Of a stretch of DNA of 64,000 bases, positions 7,618 through 63,890 are shown in pieces (position 1 is the first letter of the stretch; each line of letters begins with the position of its first letter). The notes beneath the pieces are model-generated. The model did no database searches. It worked only from the letters and a program-made list of their open reading frames with translations, and had not been told where the DNA came from. A program made the position numbers and the translations under genes. Origin of the DNA: Anthoceros angustus (Eukaryota; Plantae; Anthocerotophyta); assembly GCA_010909165.1 (NCBI GenBank), contig MU008167.1, positions 1,178,001 to 1,242,000 of the forward strand, written 5' to 3'.

Positions 7618-8308
7618 CCCGAGTCTATCCACCGAAACCACAAAGTGTGAAGCTCCACAGACTCACGAGGAATTTTTTCTCATGCTCCAGAACTTGCGCC
7701 GTTCCCAGTGCTTGCACTGCCACACCTGTGTGCTGCTCACAGGCTGGATCCTGCGAGTACACCATTTAGCACGGTACAGACTGTCGGTGCAGCACCTTCG
7801 GCTCATTTTACGGCAAGATATGTACATAGTCGGTAAGCCTTTAGATATCAGAGTGGAGTCCAGGAAGCACGGTGTGACAGCACCGCAGACACGATGGAAC
7901 TGGTACCTACCTACAGTTTACGGGCAGTAGCTTGTAAAGCGTGTTACGCATGAGCAGTGGCCAGTCCTTCTCACTCACTCGTACTGGTCTATTCTCTCTT
8001 TCCATCAAGATAGTGCACATAGTTCTAATACTCCGTTGGATTGTGGGCTTGGCGGCTTGATTCTGCTGTTGCTTATCCTTTGAAGACGGTGCTCAATCTG
8101 ATCAGTGGTCCTCTTAGACCCGCTGGCTGTGTAGGCCCCCATAGCAATTGATGGTATGTACCGGCAGCCACTTAGACGTGTGGAAGTCTCTGGCCGTTGG
8201 CCTTCGATCAGAACCTTCCCTACTGGATGTCTGCAGGATGCACCAGGCCTCAAGGCTGTAACTGCTCAATGCATTCTGGGATCCTGAGACTGCCAATTTT
8301 CATCCAGA

Positions 8309-10794
8309 ATGAAGTGTGTATGTTGGGTTATTCTGGTCTTGGCATACCAGATTATCCCACGGCCTTGGAGAATCGATGCACAGGATGTTCCGGTTCCCAC
8401 CTGCTACACTCGAGGAGCCAGGAATGCGACTTTAGATTTCTACTGGATCGCAAAAGAGGGAACCGAAGACGCCGAGTCCTACTGGGCGCCCCGTCTCCAG
8501 CTGGGTTCAGGGCCGAAAAACAACTCTCTTGTGGCTGACGACGGCTCTTTAATTGCGATGGTAGACACAGCCACAGACAGCAGGTGCCTGGACTTGGGTA
8601 CTTGCCTTCTTGATAATGGGCAACTCATCAACCTTGGCCTCACCGCTAGCACCTTCCGGATTCTGGACAAGAGAATTTTCCCATTCGGCATTGGCTCCAG
8701 AAGCAATCCTCTTGTGCCATTCGTTAGTGTGGGTAATCAGTTGCCGTTCCATACGACTCTGTGTATCAAGGAGCTGGAGAACTGGAAGCTTCCCAACAAC
8801 AAGACACATAATGGATGCGTTCGTGTAGACGACTCCAGTGGAACAGACTTGTCTGAAGCATGTCATGTCACGTTTTTTGTGCTGAAGTTTGCTTTCTTTG
8901 ATCGGATGCTGGGTGCTAACCTCCCGACAAACGTCACTGCAAGTATCTGTAGTTGCAAGATCCTGGACTACACAACCCAAGACATGTATGCGTTTGTGGA
9001 TGGTAAACTTGAAACTTATACCTTTTGCGGGCACAACCTGTTTGAGTTTGGAGAAAAGAATTTAAGGAACAGTTGTCTGTGACGGGGATCATGATTTTTG
9101 GTTGTGTGCACGTTCTTGTCTTGCAGTGAGTCCACCATCAGCTAGATCGAAAGGATCACCACACGTGATGGTGTGGGTGGGCGTTGCATTTGGTGTTCTA
9201 CTTTTGCTGGCTATGGGCTTCGTCGGATTCTATTGCCTGAAGAAGAAGTGTTGTCACGAGCAGATGGAGCACCTCTCATTGATTTCACGCCGCAGAGATG
9301 TAGAAGGTGAAAGATGAGAAGGATCTTACTTACGATCTTGAGTAACAAGAATACTTGTGCCAGTCGAATTCATCTCCAAATGGCTAACTGGCAGGAGGAT
9401 GCGTCCGTTTCCTCAGCTTACAAAGACATCGGAGCCGGCCTCCAAATGTTCTCCCTCAGCTTTATAAAGTCAGCCACAGCGAGATTTAGTGTTCGAAACA
9501 AGCTAGGCGAAGGAGGCTTTGGAGTTGTATACAAGGTGCGTAAAGTGTTCAACCTGCAGCAATGACATTGGGCTCAGGCAGCATTCCTGACAACATGTAG
9601 TGGTTGTCCTCCTACTTGGCAGGGAGTTCTGCCGGATGGGACAGAAGTGGCAGTGAAGCAAATGGCAAAAACCGGTTCCTCAAGGCAAGGAACACCCGAG
9701 TTTATGAATGAGGTGGCTCTAATCGGACAGTCACAGCATGAGAACTTGGTGAAGCTTTATGGGTACTGTCTAGAAGGTGAAGAGAGGCTGTTGGTGTACG
9801 AATTCATGGAAAAGGGCAATCTCCACCAAGCACTTTTTGGTATACATAAAAGTTATAGCTTCATTCACCGAGAAGTCGTGCAGCTGTACCTTCCCTTAGG
9901 CATGATAAGCTGAGATTTTCTTGCACCTGTAGGGAAAGACCGGCATCCGCTCTCTTGGAAGGCTCGGTACAACATCATTCTGGGAACTGCCAAAGGTCTG
10001 GCATACCTTCATCACAGCCAGAGACGGATAGTCCATCGTGATATCAAGGCCAGCAATGTGCTCCTAGACAAATATCTGCAGCCAAAAATATCTGATTTCG
10101 GTCTGGCCAAGTTCTTTGTGGAAGAGAAGAGTCATGTCAGTACTAGGGTTGCCGGCACCATGTAAGCTGCATCACTCTCAAGCATCATATGGTTACTGAA
10201 CTGGATCTGGAAAGGTCCCTTCTGACCACTTGGTGTTGGTTGATGCCATGTGCATTCAGGGGCTACCTTGCACCTGAATACGCCTTGACGGGGCAGCTCA
10301 CAGAAAAAGCAGATATCTTCAGCTTTGGAGTGCTAGTTCTGGAAGTTGTTAGTGGTCGAAGAAACATGGATTACAGAGACGCCAGAGCACCAGTGTTTCT
10401 GCTCGAATGGGTATACGTCCAGCTACAACCCAGGACCCATACATAATGCAATCAACATTCATTCCGTTGCGAAACACTAACATGTCAAGACCTGAATCTG
10501 TAGGCTTGGGACAGGTATGACGGAGGTAAACTACAGGACATCCTTGACCCCAAGATAAAGGAGGACCCTGAAGCTGTACCCGACGAAGTGTTCAAGTTGG
10601 TGCATATTGCTCTTCTTTGTGCCCAAGGGACACCCCAGAGGCGGCCCAGCATCAAAGATGTCATTTTTATGTTGGAGGGCAACACTGAGTGTACCTCAGC
10701 GCCATCCAGGCCAGAATTTCTGAGGAACACTTCTGCTATCCTACAGTCAAGTAGTTTTGTAGAAGATTGGCAGTTTTTGCAACCTCGTGAATAG
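8309..10794 (+). CDS. Receptor-like kinase: signal peptide + 3D/MltA-like ectodomain + TM + RD Ser/Thr kinase (LRR-VIII/DUF26-group kinase), 7 exons, 631 aa
   Basis: Exons 8309-9002, 9127-9299, 9395-9535, 9623-9839, 9933-10161, 10260-10410 and 10504-10794. All introns are GT..AG, phases are consistent and there is no internal stop; the intron-2 donor is the least certain. N-terminus [16 protein letters not shown]; [27 protein letters not shown] followed by KKK. Kinase motifs are intact: [58 protein letters not shown] and [20 protein letters not shown]. Confidence 0.92.
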
Positions 10795-53594: not shown

Positions 53595-53929
53595 AACTCT
53601 TAAGAATATTTTACATATGAAATAAGTATTCATAAAAGTATGAGAGTAAATAGTATAAAGATACTTATTGAGTGATCGACTTTCACAGGGAGCTGCTTTA
53701 CATATATAGACCTTCGTGAATATATATCCATACTCTATATATAGGATTAGAATTTTTTTGTTAACTCCTACACTCCTCATGAAATTAGTTCAAACTGAGC
53801 ATTTGATGAAATTAGTTCCAACTAAGCATTTGATGATACTGGCTCAACCTGAGCATTCCATGAAATAATTGGCTCAAGCTGAGCATCGGATGCATTCATA
53901 TGGCTTATGGCCTCTAACCCATCTCAAGC

Positions 53930-55345
53930 TTGACATGTCACTTTTCTTGTGCTGGAGTTTTTATTCTTCTGGAGACAAACTTCACTGCTAATATTGGGTA
54001 CTAACCTGGAGACAAACTTCACTGCTAATATCTGTAGTTGCGAGATCCTAGACTACACAACATATATGCGTTCGTGGATGATACGCTTGTAACATGTCTT
54101 CTGCAGGCACAACCTGATAGTTTGTTGCATTGAGTTTGGAGAAAAGCATTCGAACTGCAGTCTGTGACGGGGCTCATGATTTTTGGATGTGCGCACGTCC
54201 GTCGACCATGAATGAGGTGGCTCTAATCGGACAGGTCACACATGAGAACTTGGTGAAGCTTCATGGGTACTGTTTAGAAGGAGAGGAGATGCAGCTGTTG
54301 GTGTACGAATTCGTAGAGAAGGGCACTTTCCACCAGGCACTCTTTGGTATTCATGAAAGCTGGCACAAATTTGAACTATTGAAGTAATTCAACGTGATCG
54401 AATTCCAAGGACCATGACCAGGATTTATCCATCCAACACTGCCGATCTGTGCCTATTTCCGAGACTGTCGATCTTCGACAAAACGTCTGGAGTATAGGAT
54501 AGCGGGAGTTTTACTTAGAAATTCTGTCCTCGATGACACTGAGGTATACTCACTTTGGACCTGCAACATAGAAATGGCCTCTCTGATGCTGGGCCGCCTC
54601 TGGGGTGTTCCTTGGACACAAAGAGAAGCAATATGCACCAACTTCAACACCTCCTCGGGTCCAGCTTCAGGGTCCTCCTTAATCCTGGCCTGTAGTATGT
54701 CCTGTAGTTCACCGTCTTCATACCTGTAGGCTGTCCCAAGCCGATCCAGATTCAGGTCTTGTTAGTGTTTCAAAAGGGAATGACGTTGATTGCATCCTGG
54801 GTTGTAGCTGGCCGTATACCCATTCGAGCAAAAACACTGGTGCAATGGCGTTTCTGAAGTCCCTGTTTCTTCGACCACTAACAACTTCCAGAACCAGCAC
54901 TCCAAAGCTGAAGGTATCTGCTTTTTCTGTGAGCTGCCGCGCCAAAGCGTATTCAAGGTGCAAGGTAGCCCCTGAGTGCACATGGCATCAACCAACACCA
55001 ACTGGTCAGAAGGGACCTTTTCAGATCCAGATGCGATCCAGATGCAGTAACCATACGATGCTTAAAAGGGACGCATGGGTTACATGGTGCCGACAACCCT
55101 AGAGCTGACATGACTCTACCATACTTGTGTCCCCTGAATTCATCTCCAAATCGTTTACTGGCAGGAGGATGCGTCTGTTTTCTCAGCTTACGAAGACATC
55201 GGAGCTGGCCTCCAAATGTTCTCTCTCGGCGGTAGAAAGTCAACCACAGTGAGATTTGAGGTTCGAAACAAGCTGGGCGAGGGCGGCCTTGAAAATTGTC
55301 CATGAAACCTGCAGCGATAATATTGGGCTCAAGAAGCATTCCTAC
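53930..55345. pseudogene. Scrambled relic of a second 3D-ectodomain RLK
   Basis: 53930-54200 (+) holds the ectodomain end (HVTFLVLEF...SCEILDYTT) and intron 1. 54207-54355 (+) is the second half of kinase exon 4, 54400-55095 (-) is exons 5-7 and 55120-55345 (+) is the exon 3 region. Deletions and frameshifts throughout. Confidence 0.88.
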
Positions 55346-58205: not shown

Positions 58206-58859
58206 TCAAGTGTAGGAGAGGATTTGGCAATCAGGCTTGATCACGGCATGGACTGTGTCAGGCAGAACTTGCTCCAGTGCCTTGTACTGCGCGAAGTACT
58301 TGACGAAGAAATCGATGTGGCACTCGTCGAAGTAGCCGCGATCGTCCACCCGGACGCATCCGTTGTGGACTTTCCCACTGGGAAGCCTCACGTTATGCAG
58401 CGCCTGAACGTAGAGCTTGGTGAAGGCGGGGAGATCGACGGTGGCCACGCTCACATACGGCACCAGCGCGTTCTCGAACCCGCCTTGTCCGAACGGGTAC
58501 TTCGACCTGTCAAGGATCTCGAACACGTCCGACGCGCTGCCCGCGTTGATGAGGTCCCCGTTGGTGAGAAGGCACGTTCCTTCTTCCACGCACTTGCTGT
58601 AGGTCTTGGCATCCACCCTGGCGATGGTGCTGCCGTCTTCCCCGATGATGGACTTGGTTTTGGGTCCCGTCAAGGTGATGGGTTCCCCGTCGTCGGTCTC
58701 GTCCTGGAAGCCTTCCCTGGCGATCCAGTACTGCGTGAATGTGAGGTCGCTCCGGCCGTTGTAGCAGGATGCGCTGGCTTGGGGCAGAGCTGCCAGCGTG
58801 CATAGGAAGCAAGCAGCCAGTGCAAGACACACGAGCCTGCTGCTGCTGTTGGTGGCCAT
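58206..58859 (-). CDS. Secreted 3D/MltA-like domain protein, 217 aa, intronless
   Basis: MATNSSSRLVCLALAACFLCTLAALPQASA is a signal peptide. The mature domain is homologous to the RLK ectodomain ([45 protein letters not shown]). 3D-type motifs are present: T.YW, SVATVDLPAFTKLYV and VDDRG..HIDFFV. GC-rich coding, intact ORF. Confidence 0.88.
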   Translation of the reverse strand: MATNSSSRLVCLALAACFLCTLAALPQASASCYNGRSDLTFTQYWIAREGFQDETDDGEPITLTGPKTKSIIGEDGSTIARVDAKTYSKCVEEGTCLLTNGDLINAGSASDVFEILDRSKYPFGQGGFENALVPYVSVATVDLPAFTKLYVQALHNVRLPSGKVHNGCVRVDDRGYFDECHIDFFVKYFAQYKALEQVLPDTVHAVIKPDCQILSYT

Positions 58860-59699
58860 CGGTTTCTTGTTCCCTCTTGAGGATGTGTGGATGCGGGAAA
58901 TGGGATGTCCCAAAGGTAGCATAGGATGAGGCAGTGATCATCCGAGAGAGCTGTCTATCGCCCAGCTTCACACCCTTGACAAGCTGGGGCGTGTGAGCTA
59001 CTGGAAGGGGATAGTACAGATCAGTTCCATCTGTCAGTGTCTGGAGTGCGAGTGCTTGACTGAAGTAGCGGAGGTGGGTTCCAGTCCCATCAGTGTCTAC
59101 AATCTGGAATCCTGCAGGGACAGCGTTGAAGCTACTCGCAGGCTGGAGCAGCTCACGCGTATGGCAGTGCAATTGAGCAGTTGGAACTGCGCAACTTCGT
59201 CTCTGTAACATAGTACTACCTATACTATGAATCCCTAAATAGTAGTATGATTCTACACCACTAAACTCTAAACCCAACATTCTCTAACACAAGGAATATG
59301 AAGAGAAGAAAAACCCTAAGCACGCTCTTTAATTTACATAAGAACTGCCCTTTACATATATGTACTTCCAAAACAAAAATCAGAACCACTAAGCATAGTA
59401 GACTTAGAAGAATATCCTGATAATCCCTGAAAATATCCAAAAACTGGATCAATAGGTTCAATCTTCAAACTGGCAAAATATACACCGTGAAAGACATTTG
59501 AGACCTAAGACAAAACACTACAAACCACCGTAAAAAATGGAAACGGTACTAATGACTGAAGAAAGAGAGCAAACGAGATTAAAGCAAATTTCTTAGACAT
59601 GATAAGGAAGAAGTGTATATTTGACATCCCTGCATCGTCTTAATCCAAATGTGGCCATGTTATCTCTCAAAAGTTGTAGGAATCCAATTAGCTTATCCA

Positions 59700-62600
59700 G
59701 CATTACCATATCCAGCACCTTGTAGGATTGTCGACGTCCAAGGACCATGACCAGGATTTAACCATCCAGCACTCCCGATCTGTACCTATTTCCGAGATGG
59801 CAAAAACTGACAATCATCGACAAAACTACTGGCCTGTAGGATAGCAGGAGTGTTACTGAGAAATTCTGGCCTGAATGGCTCTGAGGTGCACTCACTGTGG
59901 CCCTGCAACATAGAAATGACCTCTTTGATGCTGGGCCGCCTCTGGGGTGTTCCTTGGGCACAAAGTAGAGCAATGTGCACCGACTTGAACACCTCCTCTG
60001 CTGCAGCTTCAGAGTCATCCTTGATCCTGGGGTCAAGTATGTCCTGTAGTTTACCATCTTCATTCCTGTCCCAGGCTGCAGATTCAGAACTTGTTAGTGT
60101 TTCAAAATGGACTGAACATTGCATTATTGATTGGTCCTGGGTTGTAGCTGGAAGACCCATTCCAGCAGAAACACTGGTGCCCTGGCGTCCCTGAAATCCA
60201 TGTTTCTTCGACCATTAACAACTTCCAGAACCAGCACTCCAAAGCTGAAAATATCAGCTTTTTCAAGGCGTATTCAGGTGCAAGGTACCCTTTCAGTGCA
60301 CATGGCATTAACCAACAGTACCAACTGGTCAGAAGGGACCTTTCCACATCCAGATCCAGTCACCATTTGATGTTAAAAAAGTGATGCATTGCTTACGCCG
60401 GCAAACCTAGTGCTGACATGACTCTTCTCTTCTACAAAGAACTTGGTCGGACCGAACTCAGAGATTTTTGGCTGCAAGTTTTGTCTAGGAGCACATTGCT
60501 GGCCTTGATACCACGATGGACTATCCGTCTCTTACTTTGATGAAGGTAAGCCAGACCTTTGGCAGTTCCCAGAAGCCTAAGTTGTCACACACAAGCCGCC
60601 TGGTGACGACTTGGGTGTTCCATGGTCATTGCCGGTCATTGCCCTGGTCACTCTGTGAGCCTTCACCCTTGTGCCCGTTGAATTCATCTCCACCTGGCTA
60701 ACTGGCACAAGGATGCGTCCGGTTCCTCAGCTTACAAAGGCATCGGAGCCGGCCTCCAAATGTATTCTCTCAGTGCTATAAAGTCAGCCACAGCGAGATT
60801 TGATGTTCGAAACAAGCTGGGCGAGGGAGGCTTTGGAATTGCATACGAGGTGCATAAAGTGTTCAACCTGCAGCAATGACATTGGGCTCAAGCATTCCTG
60901 ACTAGGTACATAGAGTGGTTGTACTCCTCCCTGGCAGGGAGTTTTGCAGGATGGGACAGAAGTGGCGGTGAAACATATGGCAAAGACCTCAAGTCAAGGA
61001 ACACCCGAGTTTATGAATTAGGTGGCTCTAATTGGACACTCACAGCATGAGAACTTGGTGAAGCTTTTTGTGTACTGTCTAGAAGCAGAGGAGGGGTTAT
61101 TGGTGTACGAATTCATGGAGACGGGCCACCTCCACCAAGAACTCTTTGGTATTCATGAAAGCTTTAGCTTCATTCATTGTTGCACCTGTAGAGACCGGCA
61201 TCCGCTCTCCGGAAGCCTTTCAACATCGTTCTTGAACTGCCAAAGGTCTGGCATGCCCTTCATCAAAGTCAGAGACGGATATTTCATCGTGATATCAAGG
61301 CCAGCAATGTGCTCCTAGGCCAAAAGTCTGCGACTTCGGTCTGGCCAAGTTCAGAGGAGAAGAGACATGTCAGCACTAGGGTTGCCGGCACCATGCATCA
61401 CTTTCAAGCATCAATTGGTTACTGAATCTGGATGCGGAAAGGTCCTTCTGACCAGTTAGTGTTGGTTGATGCCATGTGCACTCAGTGTTAACCAGTGTTT
61501 CTGCTCGAATGGGTATCGTCCAGCTACAACCCAGGACCAATAGATAACGCAATGTTCAGTCCCTTTGAAACACTAACAAGTCCTGATTCTGCAGGCCTGG
61601 GACAGGTATGAAGAAGGTAAACTACAGGACAGTTGACCAGGATCAAGGATTACCTTGTAGGATTGTCGACGTCCAAGGACCATGACCAGGATTTAACCAT
61701 CCAGCACTCCCGATCTGTACCTATTTCCGAGATGGCAAAACTGACAATCATCGACAAAACTACTGGCCTGTAGGATAGCAGGAGTGTTACTGAGAAATTC
61801 TGGCCTGAATGGCTCTGAGGTGCACTCACTGTGGCCCTGCAACATAGAAATGACCTCTTTGATGCTGGGCCGCCTCTGGGGTGTTCCTTGGGCACAAAGT
61901 AGAGCAATGTGCCGACTTGAACACCTCCTCTGCTGCAGCTTCAGAGTCATCCTTGATCCTGGGGTCAAGTATGTCCTGTAGTTTACCATCTTCATTCCTG
62001 TCCCAGGCTGCAGATTCAGAACTTGTTAGTGTTTCAAAATGGACTGAACATTGCATTATTGATTGGTCCTGGGTTGTAGCTGCACCAGAAGAGGTGTTCA
62101 AGTTGGTGCATATTGCTCTATTTTGTGCCCAAGGAACACCCCAGAGGCGGCCCAGCATCAAAGAGATCATTTCTATGTTGCAGGGCCACAGTGAATGTAC
62201 CTCAGTGCCATCCAGGCCAGAATGTTGAGTAACACTTCTGCTATCCTACAGTCCAGTAGCTTTGTCGAAGACTGGCAGTTTTGCCACTTCGGAAATAGGT
62301 ACAGATTGGGAGTGATTGGTGTTGACAATTCTATCCAAACTTGGGTTACGGCAACCCCTTCAAACCAAGTCTCACAGATTTTTGGCTGCAAGTTTTGTCT
62401 AGGAGCACATTGCTGGCCTTGATACCACGATGGACTATCCGTCTCTTACTTTGATGAAGGTAAGCCAGACCTTTGGCAGTTCCCAGAAGCCTAAGTTGTC
62501 ACACACAAGCCGCCTGGTGACGACTTGGGTGTTCCATGGTCATTGCCGGTCATTGCCCTGGTCACTCTGTGAGCCTTCACCCTTGTGCCCGTTGAATTCA

Positions 62601-63890
62601 TCTCCACCTGGCTAACTGGCACAAGGATGCGTCCGGTTCCTCAGCTTACAAAGGCATCGGAGCCGGCCTCCAAATGTATTCTCTCAGTGCTATAAAGTCA
62701 GCCACAGCGAGATTTGATGTTCGAAACAAGCTGGGCGAGGGAGGCTTTGGAATTGCATACGAGGTGCATAAAGTGTTCAACCTGCAGCAATGACATTGGG
62801 CTCATGAAGCATTCCTGACTAGGTACATAGAGTGGTTGTACTCCTCCCTGGCAGGGAGTTTTGCAGGATGGGACAGAAGTGGCGGTGAAACATATGGCAA
62901 AGACCTCAAGTCAAGGAACACCCGAGTTTATGAATTAGGTGGCTCTAATTGGACACTCACAGCATGAGAACTTGGTGAAGCTTTTTGTGTACTGTCTAGA
63001 AGCAGAGGAGGGGTTATTGGTGTACGAATTCATGGAGACGGGCCACCTCCACCAAGAACTCTTTGGTATTCATGAAAGCTTTAGCTTCATTCATTGTTGC
63101 ACCTGTAGAGAGACCGGCATCCGCTCTCCTGGAAGCCTCGGTTCAACATCGTTCTTGGAACTGCCAAAGGTCTGGCATGCCCTTCATCAAAGTCAGAGAC
63201 GGATATTTCATCGTGATATCAAGGCCAGCAATGTGCTCCTAGGCCAAAAGTCTGCGACTTCGGTCTGGCCAAGTTCAGAGGAGAAGAGACATGTCAGCAC
63301 TAGGGTTGCCGGCACCATGCATCACTTTCAAGCATCAATTGGTTACTGAATCTGGATGCGGAAAGGTCCCTTCTGACCAGTTAGTGTTGGTTGATGCCAT
63401 GTGCACTCAGTGTTAACCAGTGTTTCTGCTCGAATGGGTATCGTCCAGCTACAACCCAGGACCAATAGATAACGCAATGTTCAGTCCCTTTTGAAACACT
63501 AACAAGTCCTGATTCTGCAGGCCTGGGACAGGTATGAAGAAGGTAAACTACAGGACAGTTGACCCAGGATCAAGGATTACCTTGTAGCTGCACCAGAAGA
63601 GGTGTTCAAGTTGGTGCATATTGCTCTATTTTGTGCCCAAGGAACACCCCAGAGGCGGCCCAGCATCAAAGAGATCATTTCTATGTTGCAGGGCCACAGT
63701 GAATGTACCTCAGTGCCATCCAGGCCAGAATGTTGAGTAACACTTCTGCTATCCTACAGTCCAGTAGCTTTGTCGAAGACTGGCAGTTTTTGCCACTTCG
63801 GAAATAGGTACAGATTGGGAGTGATTGGTGTTGACAATTCTATCCAAACTTGGGTTACGGCAACCCCTTCAAACCAAGTCTCACAGATGG
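59700..63890. pseudogene. Mosaic of RLK kinase pseudogene blocks in both orientations
   Basis: 59700-60578 (-) holds exons 5-7 and 60660-61655 (+) exons 3-7, with an in-frame TAG at ~61020 and frameshifts. 61656-62081 repeats 59720-60150. 62376-63583 repeats 60453-61655 and 63584-63888 repeats 62077-62385. Confidence 0.9.

Follow-up and report, generated by a model that had tools for sequence, protein, structure and literature searches.

A probable receptor kinase with a new class of ectodomain of probable horizontal origin in Anthoceros angustus

Plant surface immunity works with a limited set of ectodomain types and, to our knowledge, LysM is the only established reader of microbial wall glycans of the N-acetylglucosamine (GlcNAc) type among them. 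We describe here a gene of Anthoceros angustus (Anthocerotophyta) that encodes a probable receptor kinase with a new ectodomain class of probable horizontal origin, located at positions 8309-10794, forward strand, of a stretch of 64,000 nucleotides (positions 1,178,001 to 1,242,000 of contig MU008167.1, assembly GCA_010909165.1) that we call the window throughout. The systems to which its ectodomain has to be compared are the MltA-type lytic transglycosylases and the 3D domain, which takes its name from three Asp residues. The catalytic carboxylate of these enzymes is D308 in MltA, D162 in YuiC and D343 in LtgG, with the Thr of a T-x-Y motif (T99, T91 and T128, respectively) setting its orientation (PMC4499186, PMC6667503). 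The LtgG D343A mutant is inactive (PMC6667503), and D308A has been used to block catalysis in MltA (PMC4499186). Another Asp, D297 of MltA, contacts the N-acetyl group of GlcNAc at subsite -2, and the same holds for YuiC, an enzyme that turns penta-NAG into an anhydro-disaccharide (PMC4499186). The groove of MltA holds chitohexaose and closes around its ligand (PMC4499186, PMC6667503). Because 3D domains accept chitin oligomers, as YuiC does, chitin or chitosan and peptidoglycan are equally plausible ligands for a module of this kind.

The gene has seven exons, its introns are all of the GT..AG type and the joined exons are free of stops, which recovers, at the same coordinates and with the same length, the complete 631-aa reading frame proposed by a first-pass annotation made from the sequence alone. 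Exon 1 (8309-9002, 231 codons, ending in phase 1) contains a hydrophobic N-terminal leader (ca. residues 1-23), a putative signal peptide by hydropathy, and the entire ectodomain (ca. residues 30-231), with four N-x-S/T sites and eight cysteines after the leader. Exon 2 covers 9127-9299 in the 631-aa model and 9127-9306 in an in-frame alternative of 626 aa, and encodes the stalk, the transmembrane helix, a KKK stop-transfer signal and the juxtamembrane region; a single transmembrane segment was predicted at residues 245-269, just before KKK, from the one 19-residue hydropathy peak region (241-270). Exon 3, starting at 9395 in the longer model and at 9417 in the shorter one (9417-9535, 119 nt), begins the kinase with the Gly-rich loop GEGGFG. 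The other exons are common to both models. Exon 4 (9623-9839) carries the rest of the N-lobe, with the VAVK lysine, alpha-C and the hinge (Pfam PK_Tyr_Ser-Thr, E 2.9e-14); exon 5 (9933-10161) the catalytic loop HRDIKASN, characteristic of an RD kinase, DFG and the activation segment (Pfam Pkinase, E 4.8e-16); exon 6 (10260-10410, 151 nt) GYLAPE and the alpha-F region, also matched by Pfam; and exon 7 (10504-10794) the end of the C-lobe, the C-terminal tail and a TAG stop. In both in-frame models leader, ectodomain and one transmembrane helix precede the kinase within one reading frame.

The kinase part is of a familiar type. Its exons match PF00069/PF07714 above the gathering score and all the motifs GEGGFG, VAVK, HRDIK, DFG and APE are present in the translation, so that the motif set predicted for catalytic competence is complete. 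The nearest solved structures are those of RIPK, BAK1, PBL2, SOBIR1, BRI1, BIK1, SYMRK, FERONIA, CERK1 and IRAK1/4, and exon 5 taken separately matches CERK1, LYK3, BAK1 and SOBIR1 at E 1e-14 to 1e-18. By sequence it is a member of the receptor-like kinase (RLK)/Pelle (IRAK) group, the level at which membership was checked; its finer placement with the LRR-VIII/DUF26 (CRK) kinases, put forward by the first-pass annotation, is a candidate one.

The ectodomain is another matter. Residues 1-231 match zero Pfam families even at E<=10, and no Pfam signature of LRR, LysM, malectin, L-, G- or C-type lectin, WAK-GUB/EGF, S-domain, DUF26, CrRLK1L, thaumatin or PERK was found there; none of these classes was returned by the fold search either, in agreement with the first-pass statement that known RLK ectodomain signatures were missing. 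It is nevertheless far from being a chance open reading frame (ORF), because exon 1 alone has homologues at E values down to 1.5e-51. A phmmer search of 1.84 billion representative proteins gave 194 homologues at E<=1e-3, mostly secreted proteins of Mucoromycota, with similarity over the full domain (residues ca. 28-230, E 1e-51 to 1e-20). Named relatives come from Mucor, Umbelopsis, Bifiguratus, Jimgerdemannia, Gilbertella, Phycomyces, Apophysomyces, Backusella, Basidiobolus and the chytrid Nowakowskiella, and several are labelled "3D domain-containing protein" in UniRef. Nine of the 62 sequences aligned (alignment A1) match PF06725, the best at 9.4e-15, and in bacterial family members the domain is combined with SH3, LysM, CBM2 or polysaccharide deacetylase domains. 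The family shares the motifs CY..T.YWI, EGTC, PFVSVA.ND.P.GT and HNGCVRVDD. In a language-model atlas the neighbours were clusters labelled "3d domain protein" from fungi (0.95) and one with PF06725 from Myxococcota (0.93). From these sequence comparisons the ectodomain belongs to a eukaryotic, Mucoromycota-type family of secreted 3D-like proteins, and it is these, and not bacterial MltA as first thought, that are its closest relatives. The closest named sequences are from Mucoromycota and include the plant-associated Endogonales genus Jimgerdemannia.

Some further members of this family are worth recording separately. A partial protein of Bifiguratus adelaidae (P0034, 431 aa) has the C-terminal two thirds of the 3D-like domain directly before an AGC-type kinase, with no transmembrane segment, and is either a gene-model fusion or an independent fungal combination of this domain with a kinase. 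Four Logan contig proteins (P0151-P0154), rich in N, K and I and 40-43% identical to the receptor ectodomain, are membrane-anchored family members of type II; we considered and rejected them as plant copies, since their composition and type-II anchor point to an AT-rich, protist-like genome. The range of the family among eukaryotes would thus extend beyond fungi and plants.

An AlphaFold2 model built on A1 was of high confidence (predicted local distance difference test, pLDDT, 94.4; predicted template-modelling score, pTM, 0.90). When compared with the PDB by Foldseek, the first 14 matches were all MltA-family lytic transglycosylases (E from 5.8e-5; from E. coli, Burkholderia LtgG, Acinetobacter, Agrobacterium, Caulobacter and Neisseria), and among Swiss-Prot models MltA ranked first too. 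The VIA-align comparison to MltA gave Z 10.3-7.0 over 156-168 of 208 residues, with both lobes aligned, vs. Z 6.4 and below for other proteins with a double-psi-beta-barrel (DPBB), such as YuiC, expansins, kiwellin, GH45 and barwin. In the fold clusters of AFDB, fungal 3D-domain proteins were found at TM-scores of 0.88-0.89. Along similar lines, when the family profile was aligned to E. coli MltA (MG1655) with hhalign, the E value was 3e-4 over 74 columns, pairing SVGNQLP with SVASDRSIIP and VRVDD...HVTFF with VALDVGG...HFDIY. According to the model, the ectodomain is a two-lobed MltA-type module, in which an inserted beta-barrel and a 3D/double-psi-beta-barrel form a groove. The idea of a 3D/MltA-like ectodomain, put forward on three short motifs, is thus supported by the atlas, by the PF06725 members of the phmmer family, by the predicted structure and by hhalign, and none of the known RLK ectodomain classes came up in the fold search. 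Two of the three motifs do align with MltA as claimed while the T.Y motif is out of register, and PF06725 itself gave no direct match to the ectodomain.

Where the receptor departs from its family is in the active site. The position of the catalytic Asp is occupied by Thr188 (codon 8870-8872), in a column with Asp in 95% of the family and Ala in the orthologue described below; the placement comes from hhalign, from the alignment of a bacterial member (P0150, whose three Asp fall on MltA D261, D297 and D308) to MltA, and from the columns of A1. At the Thr of T-x-Y there is D43 (codon 8435-8437; M in the orthologue), whereas among the 44 other members of A1 with a residue there, 36 have T and 5 have S; Tyr45 is kept in the receptor. 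The motif had been placed at T41 in the first reading, two residues off the homologous position, at which the Thr is in fact lost. The Glu of the EGT motif, found in 93% of the family and in all four stand-alone plant copies, is L96 here (codon 8594-8596) and I in the orthologue. The residue that corresponds by hhalign to MltA D297, D175 (codon 8831-8833), is retained, as it is in 98% of the family. Finally, MltA D261 corresponds to N143, a position with Asn throughout the eukaryotic family, and the adjacent Asp of the family is Gln144 here.

This loss is selective. Out of 27 columns that are conserved at >=80% in the other 60 sequences, only three deviate in both receptor-type ectodomains: E96 is replaced by L here and by I in the orthologue, G158 by N in each of them, and D188 by T here and by A in the orthologue. 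The ectodomain of the gene described here keeps the other 24, and both receptor-type ectodomains in addition have no T-x-Y Thr. The retention of the core together with the loss, in two species, of acidic or polar residues of active-site type is the pattern that would be expected of a derivative that only binds. Because the catalytic Asp position is Thr188, we consider that the ectodomain is probably a pseudo-enzyme, MltA/3D-like and catalytically inactive. It also appears to be a genuine, constrained coding sequence: compared with the transcript of a relative, codons 1-88 (the first 38% of the ectodomain) show 16 synonymous and 7 non-synonymous differences (pS 0.26, pN 0.035, pN/pS ca. 0.13), which indicates purifying selection on this part of the domain.

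Replacements at the same positions were seen in other members of the family. In P0025, P0072 and P0060 (contigs L002, L003 and L004) the catalytic-position Asp is R, H and H, respectively; the T-x-Y Thr is His in the first two, and the third is unaligned there. P0025 is a stand-alone copy from the second plant discussed below. Judging from these residues, the three are possible independent pseudo-enzymes that carry no kinase.

The best homologue of the ectodomain (P0001) turned out to be the first exon of another such gene. The Logan contig that carries it (L001; 4.5 kb, run SRR33208241, GC 54%) encodes an intact 616-aa protein in seven GT-AG exons, with identical intron phases, a transmembrane helix and an RD kinase. 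The ectodomain of this orthologue shares the loss of the T-x-Y Thr, the Glu and the catalytic Asp. The same sample contains three stand-alone copies, each on a contig, and on two of these contigs there are plant genes with introns as well (PPR, SNAPC1, GLTP, IPMS-like and RNA polymerase Rpb2-like). Contamination was considered and rejected on account of the plant-type introns and RLK kinase of the gene described here and of the presence of stand-alone copies among intron-bearing plant genes in this second plant. In a maximum likelihood tree (quick search, unrooted, most rows with no taxon label, branch support only by the Shimodaira-Hasegawa-like approximate likelihood ratio test, SH-aLRT) the two receptor-type ectodomains form one clade (SH-aLRT 99), the four stand-alone plant copies another (96), and both fall inside a clade of 40 rows (96) that is otherwise of Mucoromycota type, with Jimgerdemannia among the nearest rows. 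This pattern, as far as sequences can tell, fits a single fusion before the divergence of the two plants, and it also fits a plant family derived from a fungal-type source.

How exons 2 and 3 are joined deserves a closer look. An RNA contig from run X2, belonging to a relative ca. 91% identical (1180 nt, depth ca. 18), covers 8200-9002, then 9127/9129-9304 and then 9393-9536. The relative's RNA thus splices exon 1 to the transmembrane exon (9002 to 9127) and continues to the first kinase exon, and so contains the junction whose absence would, according to the first-pass annotation, have meant separate genes for ectodomain and kinase. Of that seven-exon model, the connection of exons 1, 2 and 3 is therefore seen in RNA of a relative, but the precise junction used there (9306 to 9395) breaks the reading frame of the window. 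Three junctions have to be considered on the forward strand. Joining 9299 to 9395 is in frame and gives the 631 aa of the earlier model. Joining 9306 to 9417 is also in frame (626 aa); the 9306 donor is in phase 1, so exon 2 is phase 1 in and out, and with its 119-nt, phase-1 exon 3 this option reproduces the exon lengths and phases of the orthologue, which also has a 151-nt exon 6 and an alignable exon 7. Joining 9306 to 9395, the only one with RNA support, shifts the frame and reaches a stop at codon 323. The acceptor at 9417 (CCTCAG/CTTACAAAG) is retained in four of four local kinase copies, and the one at 9395 (GGCAG/G) has been lost in two of the four. The frame shift was read from the letters of the window; compared with it, the relative is 4 letters shorter within 8200-9002 and 3 letters longer in exon 2, at positions that could not be placed. 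An intact receptor kinase is most likely what this locus encodes and is the reading we prefer, with the transcript support coming from a relative.

The receptor gene is not the only trace of this family in the window. An intronless stand-alone paralogue on the reverse strand (58206-58922, 238 aa, with a hydrophobic leader and presumably secreted), identified by tblastn, translation and alignment columns, is 46% identical to the receptor ectodomain. It retains the T (TQYW), the E (EEGTC), two D (VATVD and VRVDD) and the D at the catalytic position (HIDFF), it groups with the three stand-alone copies of the second plant, and its nearest relatives are Mucoromycota proteins, with up to 50% identity to P0002 (probably Jimgerdemannia). 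We regard it as a candidate horizontally acquired enzyme. Neither this paralogue nor the orthologue ectodomain matched any Pfam family at relaxed cut-offs (E<=1-10).

The remaining copies in the window are remnants. Downstream of the receptor gene, on the forward strand, 11931-12178 is a remnant of stand-alone type in which the leader and SCYNG are joined out of frame to the last ca. 60 residues; HIDLF is kept and the middle ca. 100 residues are deleted (tblastn and three-frame translation). A remnant of receptor type is found at 53922-54399, also on the forward strand, where the end of the ectodomain (53922-54062), with an in-frame stop and HVTFL (the same Thr), is followed by a fragment of kinase exon 4. 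Kinase fragments in both orientations occupy 54.2-55.3 kb (to 55290) and 59.8-63.8 kb (59789-63804), and among them 60594-60854 and 62508-62768 are identical duplicates. The window is a birth-and-death cluster of this kinase/receptor family, and the gene at 8309-10794 is the sole complete copy of receptor type within its 64 kb.

What could such a receptor do? The explanation that we favour, and to which we give slightly better than even chances, is that this is an evolutionarily maintained RLK in which a dead MltA-type ectodomain binds a wall glycan of GlcNAc type and signals via the RD kinase. The ectodomain would no longer cleave. In the groove between the lobes, D175 and the residues around it would keep hold of the glycan, an oligomer of chitin, chitosan or peptidoglycan type; the walls of Mucoromycota are rich in chitin or chitosan. 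Occupancy of the groove would then be passed through the single transmembrane helix to the kinase, as in other pattern-recognition receptor kinases. The secreted stand-alone paralogues, with their active-site residues kept, might act as the enzymes that release the fragments, making a pair of an enzyme and a dead-enzyme sensor. The family would have entered the plant lineage probably from an early-diverging fungus, with one copy joined later to an RLK kinase. A more specific version of these events, to which we lend clearly less credit, is that a wall-glycan lytic enzyme of MltA type was acquired from an early-diverging fungus and duplicated, that some copies remained secreted enzymes, and that another, deprived of its catalytic Thr, Glu and Asp, became joined to an RLK kinase. 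A new class of pattern-recognition receptor (PRR) would have arisen in this way, in which a dead lytic transglycosylase recognises fragments of chitin or peptidoglycan type, perhaps those that its enzyme paralogues set free.

Several observations weigh against this interpretation. We found no tested activity or ligand for any eukaryotic member of the family. Searches with the ectodomain and with the hidden Markov model (HMM) of its 62-member family gave no direct profile match in Pfam, NCBIfam or the PDB, and the hhalign probability was only 40%, because the template was a single sequence, so that what ties the ectodomain to MltA is intermediate sequences, hhalign and a predicted structure. 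The loss of the Thr, Glu and Asp might weaken binding as well as catalysis. The node of the tree that matters is a polytomy in an unrooted tree, and it fits more than one sequence of events and either direction of transfer. As for the gene itself, the junction seen in the relative would, with the letters of the window, give a 322-aa protein of ectodomain and transmembrane helix that has no kinase. The RNA run from the assembly's own sample (X7) shows nothing on exons 1-2, and the RNA contigs found at 95-99% identity with the whole gene as query cover only conserved parts of the kinase, apparently deriving from paralogues. Finally, a short-read DNA contig from this organism (run X8) aligns to 8323-9570 with no mismatch and yet is 5 letters shorter, a difference that may reflect a polymorphism or a small indel in the assembly.

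These last points lead to the most serious of the rival explanations, namely that splicing of 9306 to 9395 makes a membrane-anchored ectodomain with a short tail, or a transcript targeted to nonsense-mediated decay, and that the kinase exons are decaying or belong to a minor isoform. This junction has the relative's RNA on its side, its acceptor is a good one for a plant and lies upstream of the one at 9417, the gene's expression was not seen in the organism's own RNA run, and the window contains several decayed kinase and ectodomain copies. On the other hand, the five kinase exons that follow have open frames, a full set of catalytic motifs and GT-AG borders. Moreover, two in-frame junctions exist, one of them matching the 119-nt exon and the phases of the orthologue, the relative carries unplaced indels that may alter its own frame, and the 5-letter difference to the DNA contig leaves room for a small assembly indel in the window. 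On balance we find a truncated product rather unlikely. Still less likely is that the receptor senses the plant's own wall, through a plant-made glycan or protein held in the DPBB groove much as in expansins and related plant DPBB proteins, and has a role in cell-wall integrity. Plant and microbial expansins, barwin-like proteins, GH45 and kiwellin do appear among the structural matches, at Z 5-6, and the loss of catalytic residues suits any non-cleaving binder. But the MltA matches span both lobes and reach Z 10, the nearest relatives are secreted fungal proteins and D175, the counterpart of the residue that reads the N-acetyl group of GlcNAc, has been retained. That group is absent from the main plant wall polymers.

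The two other alternatives take up the enzyme paralogues in opposite ways. In one the ectodomain is a decoy or guard that mimics the secreted enzymes to trap microbial inhibitors or effectors, its ligand being a protein. An active-looking secreted paralogue and an inactivated copy fused to a kinase in the same window would be the right ingredients, and kiwellin bound to a fungal effector (6fpg) is one of the structural matches; yet identity between the receptor and stand-alone clades is only 46% and the tree does not recover them as sister groups, which would make a poor mimic, and we know of no inhibitor for this 3D-like family. We take this to be quite improbable. In the other, the ectodomain has kept its lytic activity and works as a membrane-tethered enzyme, which the kinase regulates or to which it is unrelated. 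Its predicted fold shows no damage, with D174/D175 and N143 still in place, but the catalytic Asp position is a Thr, and the corresponding change to Ala abolishes the activity of LtgG (PMC6667503). With the orienting Thr and the 93%-conserved Glu also lost, in both species, this is to us hardly believable.

The first-pass annotation had considered this architecture absent from catalogued plant RLK ectodomains, and neither the literature nor the protein collections gave any description of it, the negative from the collections being a weak one because of length filters and clustering. A collection of 5.8 billion proteins contained no plant RLK with this ectodomain when queried with the exon-1 ORF, with region 1-125 of P0034 and with an alignment headed by the 697-aa P0056 (swamped by low-complexity words), although the length filter of the search excludes proteins of 600 aa for a query of 231-257 aa. 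The phmmer search of 1.84 billion representatives returned no full-length protein with the 3D-like domain, a transmembrane helix and a kinase, where clustering at 50% could hide one behind another RLK. No such receptor was described in the literature searched for the 3D domain, MltA or PF06725 with receptor kinases, plants or horizontal transfer; metaRLK 2.0 uses "3D domain" for structural domains generally, and the family is unmentioned in the Marchantia horizontal gene transfer paper and in the Mucoromycotina genome paper. Large surveys may already contain the class, unnoticed, among their "dark" RLKs.

If the preferred reading is true, a second glycan-reading module, unrelated to LysM, would be added to the receptor-kinase repertoire, and there would be a clear case of three steps, from a horizontally acquired enzyme of microbial type to a pseudo-enzyme and to its fusion with a signalling kinase, with the putative active enzyme paralogues persisting in the same genome and even in the same 64-kb window. 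In more general terms, it would mean that "dark" receptor kinases that Pfam cannot annotate can conceal real, conserved folds. The hypothesis is directly testable, with an ectodomain in a single exon, a confident predicted structure and few candidate ligands.

Compared with known systems, the receptor ectodomain is closest in predicted fold to MltA (GH102; PDB 2ae0, 2pi8, 2pnw, 7esj, 6qk4), sharing the two-lobed DPBB with an inserted beta-barrel lobe and having the SVxxN/D motif, D297 and the HxD/T strand in register by hhalign. It differs in that identity is ca. 12%, with no match to PF06725 or PF03562 at the gathering threshold and no direct HMM match, and in that it has Thr for D308, Asp for the orienting Thr and (family-wide) Asn for D261. 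It is eukaryotic and, as predicted from its sequence, secreted, rich in Cys and N-glycosylated, and is fused to a transmembrane helix and a protein kinase, whereas MltA is a bacterial lipoprotein. Because the sequence threshold and two defining catalytic features fail, we file it as MltA/3D-like and catalytically inactive, not as a lytic transglycosylase. With Firmicute Sps/YuiC and RlpA it has in common the DPBB core that bears the three-Asp arrangement (YuiC, Z 6.1-6.4 over 83-92 residues), but YuiC is a catalytically active, domain-swapped dimer that has no second lobe. The secreted 3D proteins of early-diverging fungi are much nearer (35-47% identity, E 1e-40 to 1e-20, TM-score 0.88-0.89, shared motifs); these, however, stand alone or carry low-complexity tails or CBM-like parts, keep the T, the E and the catalytic-position D, and in no case have a transmembrane helix and an RLK/Pelle kinase. 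In architecture the closest parallel is with the LysM receptor kinases (CERK1, LYK5, NFR1/5) and other RLKs of PRR type, in which, as proposed here, a carbohydrate-binding ectodomain with ancestry in microbial wall enzymes precedes one transmembrane helix and an RLK/Pelle kinase. A GlcNAc-type ligand would be the leading candidate, with the difference that the putative binding module has the MltA/DPBB fold and bears no LysM signature.

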